Origin: Ministeria vibrans ATCC 50519
Taxonomy: Eukaryota > Protista > Filasterea
DNA: 43,932 bases
Reading direction: 5' to 3'
Assembly (NCBI GenBank): GCA_943704425.1
Contig: CALSCP010002225.1
Span: 1 to 43,932, forward strand
Shown: piece after piece, positions 12,501 to 31,448 of the stretch
How positions within the stretch are numbered: position 1 is the first letter of the stretch
Layout of the letters: every line of letters starts with the position of its first letter
Translations under genes and position numbers: made by a program
The notes under the pieces: generated by a model
Told to the model about the DNA's origin: nothing
Database searches by the model: none
Seen by the model: only the letters and a program-made list of their open reading frames with translations

Positions 12501-13462
12501 GCCTTTGGGCTTGCCCCCGCAGCCCGGGAGCCACACGATGCAGCGGCAGCAAGAGTCAGGCATTTATGCAGCACCGTCTGCGATGGCGCCCGAAAACGAC
12601 GACGAGGACATGAATGTTGCGACGGGGATCATCGCGGGCGCACCCGCCTACCTCTTTTTGCAGTACCAGCAGCGTCAGCGCAGCGAACAGCGCGGCCTCT
12701 ACAGCACTATGCACTACCGCGAGCGACAGGAACGCTCTAAAATCTACGCGGCTGCCAATGTGTATGCGGCGACCGCGGCGGCTGGGGGCGGTGTGCGCGG
12801 GTCGTCCGCACTGGATCTGCTGCGGACGTCGGCTCAGGCAACGTCCGAGGGCAAGGTGCGCGACGCCGATATGCAGGCGGTGTACGACCTGCTCGCGTCG
12901 ATGGACACGACGCTGCGCGACTCAGAGAATCGCGACTACGACCCACTGCCGCTCAGTCGCGAGTCGGCCGTGAATGATCCCGACTACGACCCCATCGCAT
13001 CGTCTGCACGGTCGTCGCGCGTCGGCGGCGAGGGAGCCGACGGCGCCAGCGTCATTTACCAGGCGCGCTCGTCGGCCACGTACGACGACACCGAAGACGT
13101 GCCTTCCATCTATGGCGAGCTCAACTACGAGCCGTACGAGTCATCCATCTATGACGCACCCGGCCAGGTTGCCGCCGATCCCATTCCCGTCGACGATGCT
13201 CATTACGGAGGTACATTATTATATTATAATAATTATTATTTTATTGCGTGCTGGAGGAGAAAGCGATAGAGATATTATATTGACCCTTTTCCATTGTGTA
13301 GTTCCCGCGTACGAACGGTACAAACTACAAAGCAGCGACGACAAGTTTTCGACGTACCGCAGTCTCAAGCGACCCGCTCCCAAGGCCAAGGATGCCGGAT
13401 CGATTCGCGACTTCTTCTCTGCGCGCGTGTCGGGCTCGCTCGAGATGGGTGGAAGTTCGTAG
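9515..13462 (+). CDS. Multi-exon signalling adaptor: PH-like domain(s), SH2-like domain and Tyr-motif-rich disordered tail
   Basis: PH C-terminal pattern GFIICDRDSVYTFICSDSEIPEWREAL; SH2-like EPWF...NFVVAW...FWLAF...YLSIVDLV; about 20 acidic-context Tyr motifs. Internal exon boundaries are approximate. Confidence 0.65.
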
Positions 13463-13614
13463 AAGAGGAGGGTGAAAAAAAAAAAAAAGTAATCGTGTGC
13501 GAGTGACTGTGGTAAACGTGTGTGGCTCGAGAGTAGAATGAAAGCTAAGAAAGAAAGAAACAAAAAAAGGTGTTTGTTGCATTATATTGAATCTGTGATG
13601 TTGCACACAATCGC

Positions 13615-13672
13615 ATCAGACGATGAGGGTTCTTTCGCAGAGACGAAAAGACTTTCCCGCAAACGTCGTCAC
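13615..13672 (-). promoter_or_regulatory. SECIS element (type II, GUGA variant) in the 3' UTR of the YHS gene
   Basis: Transcript strand reads G-UGAC-GACGUUUGCGGG-AAAG-UCUUUUCG-UCUCUG-CGAAAGA-A-CCCUCAUCGUC-UGAU: UGAN/NGAN quartet, 12-nt helix II arm, unpaired AAA and an apical mini-stem. Confidence 0.8.
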
Positions 13673-13808
13673 AAAAAAGAAGAAAGTGGGGAAGAAAGTG
13701 TGAAACGGAGAGTCATAATAATAATAATTTATAGTTTTTGTGTCGTGGTTTGTGTTGTTGACTTTTGTTGTCGCGCATGTTGCAAAACGTGATAAACAGA
13801 CGGATTGT

Positions 13809-14489
13809 TTAGACGTTGATGTCCACTGGGCCCACTGTTGCGTTCGCCGAGCCGTACCACGCCGTCCAGTTGTCGTTAGCAACAGTGATGTAGTGTGACT
13901 CGCGTTCCTTCCACATTGCCTAATGAATGATTGGTTGTGAGCGATGATTAATTGTAAGTGTGTGAGTTCATGTTGAGGGGGTGATTTCAATTTTCTCGTT
14001 CTCTCTTGTGAGTCTTGCTGTAACATACTGCAATCTTTTCGTCGTAGTTCATGTAGAGTGTTCCATTCACAAGCGCTGTACATACGCAGTCAGTTGAAGA
14101 AGAAAAAAAGAACAATCATAAGCAGTCAGTTGAAAGGTCAACACAAACAAACACAGTATCGTACTCCACGCCTTATGCACTGGCTCCAGGCCGCCCTCGA
14201 CGGCGACCGCCCAAGATCAGTATCCACCGTACTTGGGGACAAAGGCAAGGGGGGCAGCAGCAAACTGGTCTCGGTTGGCGGCGGAGGCAAAGTGATAGTG
14301 CATCTGGCGCCATGTCGCGTTGAACGCAGACACGCCCAGCACAGCCGCATCGGCCGCCTTCAGCGAGCGGAACGCAACCACATCAACCCCGTTGAGTGCC
14401 AGTCCACCTGGCGTCTGTGGCGGCATTGGAGGGGCTGGAGGGGCCGCACACGACAGCGCAACAAGTGCCAAGACAACTCCAAGGATCAT
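13809..14489 (-). CDS. Secreted YHS-domain selenoprotein (UGA at 14217-14219 read as Sec); exons 14489-14165, 14075-14029, 13919-13809
   Basis: Signal peptide, then ALNGVDVVAF, YHFASAANRDQFAAAP, PKYGGY*SWAV, AW|TLVNGTLYMNY and WKERESHYITVANDNW. Family similarity continues in frame after the TGA, and a SECIS-like hairpin lies downstream. Confidence 0.85.
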
Positions 14490-29675: not shown

Positions 29676-31448
29676 TCATTTTTGCTGTAACAACTCCTTA
29701 CCGAGGCGCTGGACCTCTTCAAAGATGGCAAGGGACTTGGATGGAGTAGTTTGGTCGTGTTCGTGAACTGACGTGGACAGAGGCGAACTGCTGAGGAGCT
29801 CGTCAAAAAGGGCGTTCTTGTCAAGACTGGCGGGAGGAATGGCATAGCCTGCATGGATCTTCGTTTTGCTCTTCTTCTTGGTCGGAGTCACGAGAAGCTT
29901 GGGCGACGAGGAGAGAGCAGTTACAGGAAGAGTCGCGCTAACAGGCTTCTTTGGTGCTGTTGTAGTGGTGAATGTTCCTGCCGCTGCGGGTGTTGGTGTT
30001 GGTGCTGCTGCTACAGCTGCTGGTGTTGTAGTGCGTGGCGTAGATGGTCGACTTGACTTTGCGACTGTTGCGACGCATGTGCGGTTCAACGAGTCGTTTT
30101 CCGCAGGTTGCTCGACAAGGCGGACTTTGGAAGGGAGCAAAATGAGATGGGTAGCTGACGAGTCTGGAAGTTGCGTGAGAAGGGCGGCACACGCGACGCC
30201 TTCGGGGTCGGTCGCGGACGCGGTGGTGATGCTGCGACGGGCGAGCACAGGTGTCGTCTTGGGCGGACGCGCCTCCATGTAGATGGTTGCATGCTCGTGC
30301 TCTGCACGTGTCGCTATCTCTGTGGCACTTGCAAGAGCCTCTTCCAGTCTCGCATGTGCCTCCTTGCCCAGCTTGTGCTTCTTGGCCGCTACCAGCGCGT
30401 CCTGTGCACACTTGAGAGCACGGCGCACATGCGCCAATTCCACACCATAGTCACATGCGTCGTGAGCGACAGTTGCGACAAGCAGGCGCGCGTGTGACTC
30501 ATACAGGTCGCGCTTGACCGTTGCCAGTGGAGTCGCATAGCGGAACAAACGACTGTGCTTCTTCTCGGCCTCGGTCATGCCGACCACTGCCGTGTAGTAC
30601 GCATGACTTGCCTGTGCGCACAGCTGTGCTTTGTCCATTGAGAGTCGCTGTGGCGCGTCAGCGGAAGCTTCGAGCCAGTACAGCTCGTCACACTGCGCTC
30701 GAATCAGCTGAACGGACGCCGATAAGGTGCGTGGGAGCAGGTCGGAGCCGCAGTCGACACGGTCGTGCAACGACGATTCTTGCAGCACCAACAGCACGCG
30801 CAGGCTCTTTTGTAGGAAACGAATAACCTTCTTGCGGTCGTCGGTTGTGTTGAGTGACTGTCGTTCGGCAAGGACACTGTAGAGAGCCGCCAGATTGTAC
30901 AGCGCAACGGCCTTCTCCGCCGCCACATCACACAGGCCAACGGTCGACTGTCCCGCTGCGTCGCTCCAGAAGAAGAACCCCGCCTTCGGCTTTGCCCGTC
31001 GGCCGATCACTGCCTGGATGCGCTCGCTGGCTCCGTTGAGAAACACAATGTAGTCCGTCAACACTTTGATGCAGTTGGGATTCAAGGGCGCCTATAAGTG
31101 GTTTCAGTGTGAGTTGTTACTGGCGCACACTCCGCTGGCCCAAGGGTGGGGGTTTTCACTGCATGCGACCAACAACATGCTTATGGATGTCATCGACGTC
31201 TAATGCGAGTGTGTTTCATAGCGGCGTGTACGCAAGTTCGAGCGTGGCAAACAAACCGGTTTTTATCATCGATTCTTCTGTACCTCAGCGACGGTGTTTC
31301 GCTGCTTTGCAAGTTGCTCCAACACACACGAAGTCTCAGCATAGGGCACCCCTGCTTCTTCGCGTGCAGCGGTGCTGGCAAACGCCGCCGACGACTTTTT
31401 CTTGTCGACTGTTTTCACTGGAAGCGCCAAAAGAGGAAAGGCAGTCAT
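29676..31448 (-). CDS. BRO1-domain protein (BROX-like), 2 exons
   Basis: LLALPVKT, FFWSDA, EKAVALYNLAALY, YGVELA and AEHEHATIYME; Pro/Thr-rich tail. Confidence 0.8.

Follow-up and report, generated by a model that had tools for sequence, protein, structure and literature searches.

A very probable eukaryotic-type SECIS element within the 3' UTR of an intron-containing YHS-domain selenoprotein gene of Ministeria vibrans

YHS-domain selenoproteins have been reported from prokaryotes (PMC1976440, PMC2398784, PMC13188914), including an Olavius symbiont and the GOS data sets, and a 2026 review gives the motif of the family as GxU (PMC13188914). The reports that we found are prokaryotic only and make no link between YHS selenoproteins and eukaryotes; likewise, the word YHS is absent from the text of a 2020 survey of 137 algal selenoproteomes and 42 families (PMC7539508). 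The same survey provides a precedent for a bacterial-type selenoprotein family with a eukaryotic SECIS, namely AhpC_b of Thalassiosira oceanica (PMC7539508). This is the same kind of case as the one described below, an otherwise prokaryotic family served by a 3' UTR SECIS, although the protein family is different and the host is an alga, whereas the host here looks holozoan-like. The eukaryotic SECIS of type (form) II, represented in Rfam by RF00031, is located in the 3' UTR and combines a UGA...GA quartet of non-Watson-Crick pairs with a helix II some 12 nt long, an unpaired AAA motif and an additional apical helix.

The window analysed here is the whole stretch of 43,932 nucleotides of the M. 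vibrans genome, and all of the named type II features are found in it in one hairpin on the minus strand (13672..13615). We consider it very likely that this hairpin is the functional SECIS of a nuclear, intron-containing gene for a YHS-domain selenoprotein. The gene shares with the prokaryotic YHS selenoproteins (NF041384) the domain family, the G-x-U position of Sec (here YGGY-U), the small size of the product and an N-terminal leader. In bacterial members, however, the SECIS is part of the coding sequence and directly follows the UGA, where we found no significant hairpin, and, unlike them, the gene described here has two spliceosomal introns and a SECIS in the 3' UTR. The eukaryotic SECIS itself is a known type of element.

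Read on the minus strand, the element starts with GUGAC (13672-13668) and the 5' strand of helix II, GACGUUUGCGGG (13667-13656), which leads to the unpaired AAAG (13655-13652); the fold, the sequence and the alignment described below place its AAA motif at a distance of 12 nt above the quartet. The apical part comprises the 5' strand of the stem, UCUUUUCG (13651-13644), the loop UCUCUG (13643-13638) and the 3' strand CGAAAGA (13637-13631); a single A (13630) separates it from the 3' strand of helix II, CCCUCAUCGUC (13629-13619), and UGAU (13615..13618) closes the element. The 5' UGAN and 3' NGAN of a quartet are thus found, at the sequence level, at 13671-13668 and 13618-13615. The 5' half, UGAC (13668..13671), is invariant in five aligned SECIS elements, and the 3' half is followed by G at 13614 to give the UGAUG common to all five. 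The core from GUGAC to UGAU (13615..13672) was delimited by the sequence, the fold, the best match of two covariance models built without it, R2 and R3, and the alignment with four elements of known families.

Folding of an isolated 91-nt segment gave a minimum-free-energy structure with the pairs GACG/CGUC, UG/CA and GGG/CCC in helix II and an 8-bp apical stem, leaving AAAG and the UGA/GA positions unpaired. The 12-nt 5' arm of helix II forms nine standard pairs before AAAG, in keeping with the usual length of about 9-12 nt; the helix is interrupted by two mismatches (U.U and C.U) and a bulged U. In the same fold, UCUUU-U-CGU pairs with GCGAAAGA beneath a short loop to form the apical helix III (13631..13651) above the AAA internal loop, as in type II elements. 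The letters and parts of the hairpin were exactly as given by an earlier reading of the window made from the sequence alone (the sequence-only reading), and its assignment to the type II geometry of quartet, 12-nt arm, AAAG and apical helix held, including a fit to the SECIS consensus of the genome itself.

The consensus flanks of RF00031, ...UGACG...CUGAUG, are the same as those of the YHS hairpin, which differs from the Rfam element in the G before the quartet, in lacking an adjacent helix I and in the mismatches and bulge of helix II. The base preceding the quartet UGA (13672) is G instead of the usual A, so the customary AUGA is absent. As GUGA also opens the SECIS elements that this genome has for SPS2 and MsrA, the G is, on this comparison, a tolerated variant in M. 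vibrans. Helix I was already described as not obvious in the sequence-only reading, and indeed the immediate flanks of the quartet do not pair. The sole helix I that can be drawn is an uncertain, distal helix of nine pairs between GUUUCACAC (13698..13706) and GUGUGCAAC (13600..13608), across a 25-nt pyrimidine-rich 5' loop, and the fold containing it (13720-13585) disrupts helix II. The hairpin showed no excess stability over shuffled sequences (z 0.10 for the 91-nt segment); the wider context, 13720-13585, gave z -1.07 with a minimum-free-energy fold that rearranges helix II. The folding z-score is uninformative for a short, irregular kink-turn hairpin.

The gene upstream of the element has three exons on the minus strand. 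The coding part of exon 1 (14165..14489) starts with an ATG at 14489-14487, encodes a hydrophobic N-terminus and matches YHS_seleno_dom, and its reading frame goes on past an in-frame TGA (SWAVAVEGGLEPVHKAW). The product of exon 2 (14029..14075), LVNGTLYMNYDEKIA, represents the G-x-LY-x-NY motif conserved in the YHS family and is comparable to VLDGKLYLNYNDKIQ of the homologue P0023, and the coding part of exon 3 (13809..13919) encodes AMWKERESHYITVANDNWTAWYGSANATVGPVDINV and ends with TAA at 13811-13809, as supported by its splice joint in four runs and by translation. The exons are separated by intron 1 (14076..14164, 89 nt) and intron 2 (13920..14028, 109 nt), both GT..AG on the minus strand. 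Both are confirmed by runs X1, X5, X6 and X7, whose spliced RNA contigs have joints at 14075/14165 and 13918/14028 (cut +1), with CT..AC ends on the plus strand. Together, the exons sum to 483 nt in frame and close at the TAA, and the predicted product is a 160-residue YHS-domain protein, probably secreted.

The in-frame TGA (14217..14219), which we propose as the Sec codon, corresponds to residue 91 of 160 in the motif YGGY-U-SWAV (PKYGGY-TGA-SWAVAV). It is found exactly at the Sec/Cys position of the YHS_seleno_dom family (NF041384), with Sec in G-x-U. Bacterial relatives have YGGYC-A/S-WAV at this place, resembling the residues around the proposed Sec, or are called as ending at YGGY. Against NF041384, with its curated whole-protein cut-off of 70 bits, the part of exon 1 before the TGA scored 54 bits (profile positions 2-59, E 1.7e-14), and exon 1 read through the TGA scored 63.8 bits (profile 2-78, reaching the end of the exon). 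Exon 3, searched on its own because the exon pieces were used separately and not as a joined protein, had no match to NF041384 and gave no BLASTP alignment with a bacterial homologue. Two claims of the sequence-only reading are thereby borne out: the gene is of the bacterial type, as it matches the prokaryote-curated NF041384 with its TGA at the GxU Sec position, and it has introns. A 7-bp GC hairpin, GGUCGCC/GGCGGCC (14160-14222 of the window, minus strand), located 11 nt past the Sec UGA, was considered as a bacterial-type SECIS and rejected, being no stabler than shuffled sequences (z 0.64).

The SECIS hairpin begins 136 nt past the TAA (the earlier estimate was about 137 nt). In run X5, a 628-nt contig covers 13617-13918, 14028-14075 and 14165-14439 and includes both YHS splice junctions, so that the 3' UTR segment 13617..13808 (minus strand; record 8 of this run) is transcribed contiguously with the spliced exons. 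Coverage in this run is absent at 13418-13616, and the contig of the convergent gene ends at 13417. Since the spliced contig reaches 13617 and is followed by this void, the hairpin belongs to the YHS mRNA; we therefore observe it in the 3' UTR of a spliced YHS mRNA with an in-frame UGA, from contigs that show neither strand nor poly(A) site. Polyadenylation upstream of 13672, which according to the sequence-only reading would have spoken against the element, is contradicted by the same contig. No base differences within the hairpin were seen in any run. Upstream of it, at 13714 in the 3' UTR (minus strand), the X5 contig carries an ATA insertion in a UUAUUAUUAUUAU tract, which is a microsatellite length polymorphism between strains.

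The neighbouring convergent gene on the plus strand has an intron at 13209-13299 (joint 13208/13300, GT..AG) and, according to this joint and the translation, a stop TAG at 13460..13462. The two convergent stop codons are 346 bp apart, close to the gap of about 350 bp, shared with the 3' end of the convergent gene, that had been noted from the sequence. Runs X1 and X6, which are deeper, contain individual contigs with splice junctions of both genes, and, because these contigs merge both transcripts, the two 3' UTRs must abut or overlap. In addition, an X1 contig of 126 nt and depth 13 in the window segment 13890-14109 (plus strand) joins 13953/14048 with GT..AG on the plus strand; it is a spliced antisense transcript over YHS exons 2-3, perhaps produced by read-through of the convergent gene.

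Such an arrangement raises the alternative that the hairpin is a real RNA structure serving the tail-to-tail gene pair, in 3' end formation, stability or antisense regulation, and not in Sec insertion. Its position inside the gap between the convergent stops, the merged X1/X6 contigs and the existence of the plus-strand spliced contig are all compatible with this role. However, UGAC, AAA and UGAUG occur at SECIS spacing in a strand-specific manner, identical to those in the 3' UTRs of four selenoprotein genes of this genome, and immediately upstream, on the strand that fits, there is a gene of a selenoprotein family with a TGA in frame; moreover, the hairpin has no stability excess. We consider a role confined to the gene pair very improbable.

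The interpretation of the hairpin as a SECIS presupposes an appropriate cellular background. The genome contains tRNA-Sec (RF01852, 55.3 bits, above the Rfam cut-off), although ARAGORN detected nothing at this locus, a multi-exon SepSecS gene, SPS2/SelD with an in-frame TGA, and the fourth domain of eEFSec (55 bits). Judged by this gene content, the genome encodes the eukaryotic Sec machinery (tRNA-Sec, SepSecS, SPS2, eEFSec) and the organism uses selenocysteine. Two GPx genes have TGA at the catalytic position (NVASK-U-GRT and NVATY-U-GET); TGA likewise occupies this position in SelO (which ends ..VAVS-U-SS*), in MsrA (G-U-FW) and in a deiodinase-like gene (T-U-PPY).

For some of these genes the SECIS is less clear. 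The second GPx gene (NVATY-U-GET; L010, G000:C2371:7248-10442) had no convincing element within its 3.2-kb locus when searched with the descriptor scanner and R2, and its SECIS may lie further downstream or differ in form. Downstream of the deiodinase-like gene, a hairpin with AAAG and UGAUG (L049:1821-1889, G000:C1890) has GGAU where the other SECIS elements have UGAC and scores 9.4 bits under R2; it may have a non-canonical quartet or may not be a real element. Searches for the Rdx and Sep15/SelM families gave no matches, probably due to short exons.

Generic SECIS searches contributed little. The Rfam model SECIS_1 (RF00031) had no match either at the locus (E<=10) or in the whole window and found nothing over the 29.7-Mb genome, and its gathering score of 35 bits was not reached by the YHS hairpin. 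When the isolated elements of GPx-a, SPS2, SelO and MsrA were offered to the same model, it found SelO alone, weakly, with 17 bits. As it misses three of the four elements of known families, the Rfam miss is weak evidence against the YHS hairpin. A loose SECIS descriptor was rejected as a test for its lack of stringency, since it matched about 70 times over the window (about 1 per 1.2 kb), coding regions included, and descriptor scanners were used just to find candidates in selenoprotein 3' UTRs. One of the coding look-alikes, near 31009 inside a 469-aa ORF (29676-31085 of the window, minus strand), reads GUGAU, 12 nt, AAAG ... UGAU and folds with -32.9 kcal/mol.

A more appropriate standard was provided by the SECIS elements of the genome itself. 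The 3' UTR hairpins of GPx-a and SPS2 share [A/G]UGAC GAC, then 11-12 nt, AAA and UGAUG, and UGAC-G, 11-12 nt, AAA and UGAUG are common to the GPx-a, SPS2, SelO, MsrA and YHS hairpins. The SECIS elements of GPx-a (C1971), SPS2 (C216), SelO (C313) and MsrA (C173) have the type II architecture, as does the YHS hairpin, but they have a short helix I, read from the flanks, 0-6 nt from the quartet, which the YHS hairpin lacks. Alignment of the hairpins with MAFFT misplaced the AAA motif and was replaced by a model-guided alignment, with the model R1 seeded from a single sequence. Covariance models were then built from GPx-a, SPS2 and SelO (R2) and from these three with MsrA (R3), the YHS hairpin being left out of both.

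Under R2, the YHS hairpin was the top match in the 44-kb window, with 19.9 bits (E 0.0013) and the next match at 12.2 bits. The MsrA SECIS, which is absent from R2, scored 19.8 bits under this model, so that the YHS hairpin is on a par with a genuine element from a known selenoprotein family. R3 again ranked the YHS hairpin first in the window, with 23.0 bits (E 0.0021), a full-length alignment and the next match at 11.3 bits. The coding look-alike near 31009 was not picked up by R2 or R3. At the scale of the genome, 23 bits corresponds to an E of about 1 (scaled from 19.6 bits at E 8.9) and is borderline; the statistical case therefore rests on score and position together, the chance of a match of such score in this 346-nt, strand-specific interval having a probability of the order of 1e-5. 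The genome-wide searches with R2 and R3 were limited to scoring 150 first-look candidates, and their lists do not include the YHS hairpin.

Two genome matches of R2/R3 were rejected: that at C2467 is without UGA, and that at C1920 repeats part of the SelO SECIS next to a stretch of N. The C1920 copy (L039/L054, G000:C1920:47109-47179) covers the 5' half of the SelO SECIS and probably stems from the SelO locus on C313, as a haplotig or a duplicate made in the assembly.

In the alignment of the five elements, UGAC-G, AAA and UGAUG are invariant. Standard pairs fill 87.5% of the pair cells and two-sided changes occur in 15 of 18 pairs, counts that lean towards structure as the alignment was fitted to the model. 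A strict pattern shared by GPx-a, SPS2 and YHS had 18 matches genome-wide versus 2 in the control; 10 of the 18 fall in an EGF-like coding repeat, and a few others are probable chance matches. YHS matches this pattern by construction, and what counts is that the search led, independently, to the hairpin downstream of SelO, a gene that contains Sec. The EGF-like repeat (reading ..DDCASNPCENGATCLD..) is present in near-identical copies on many very short contigs (C757, C770, C1030, C1295, C1889, C2076, C2671 and C2738 of G000; L022-L032), which look like collapsed or fragmented repeats of at least one large EGF-repeat gene.

These comparisons bear on the possibility that the hairpin is a chance SECIS look-alike, with the TGA being a true stop or the gene decaying, and just a 90-residue N-terminal fragment being made. 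The frequency with which loose descriptors match, including the look-alike at 31009, the folding z-score of about 0, the lack of an Rfam match, the expectation of the 23-bit R3 score about once per genome and the missing helix I could all be cited for it. It would have to be reconciled, however, with the low probability of such a score in the interval in question, with the failure of R2 and R3 to respond to the coding look-alike, and with the properties of the gene: the NF041384 match carries on through the TGA, splicing keeps the downstream exons in frame and encoding a family motif, and the TGA coincides with the Sec/Cys position of the family. We regard a chance resemblance as quite improbable.

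For a functional SECIS, a mechanism can be proposed from what is established for Sec decoding in eukaryotes. The quartet (UGAC/UGAU), with its tandem G.A/A.G pairs, would form a kink-turn that binds SBP2, and the quartet together with the AAA motif 12 nt above it would bring eEFSec, loaded with Sec-tRNA(Sec), to the translating ribosome. There, UGA 14219-14217 would be read as selenocysteine in YGGY-U-SWAV rather than ending a product of 90 residues.

The relatives of the gene point to a bacterial type of protein. A search of 1.84 billion representative proteins with exon 1 gave 478 relatives (E<=0.001). The best single-domain relatives, with 43-55% identity, YGGYC-A/S-WAV and signal or Tat-like leaders, look bacterial, while the best-scoring non-self match is a five-domain protein of 1113 residues whose cluster includes an entry from Heterosigma akashiwo. 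TGA-containing, eukaryote-like homologues (GGF-U-SYGIA / AYGIA) were also found on transcript and Tara Oceans contigs. The frames of two Logan transcripts (L042 and L043) and a Tara Oceans contig (L044) stay open long after the TGA, and their YHS-like genes are probably eukaryotic; one of the three has PGPS repeats and a Cys-rich tail. No SECIS was recognised in the short 3' sequences at hand: L042 had no convincing element, and L044 breaks off 85 nt beyond its stop codon. Nor did any orthologue come to light in which the SECIS is conserved. The pol iota gene neighbouring the YHS gene has its best matches in an ichthyosporean (Nk52) and deuterostome animals, with 36-38% identity, which points to a holozoan-like host.

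By these comparisons, the gene is bacterial in type, and its acquisition from bacteria is plausible. On the other hand, a eukaryote (Heterosigma akashiwo) has YHS-like proteins too, and there are TGA-containing homologues of eukaryotic appearance. A specific scenario, in which the gene passed from a bacterium to a holozoan-like protist and Sec was kept or regained through a de novo 3' UTR SECIS working without an adjacent helix I, seems to us rather unlikely. If it were true, the gene would provide a dated example in which the bacterial signal for Sec decoding was exchanged for the eukaryotic one on a single gene, and it would be the first eukaryotic YHS selenoprotein. More generally, if the gene came from bacteria, it would illustrate the survival of a Sec codon when the system that decodes it is changed.

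The locus also illustrates how such genes escape annotation. The in-frame UGA conceals the full 160-residue protein from ordinary gene callers, and the public protein collection that we searched contains just the 90-residue piece ending at the TGA (P0001). Most of the SECIS elements in this genome escape the curated Rfam model but are recovered by a small model made from the genome itself, which is a practical point for the annotation of protist selenoproteomes. The element described here would add the YHS domain family to the list of eukaryotic selenoproteins.
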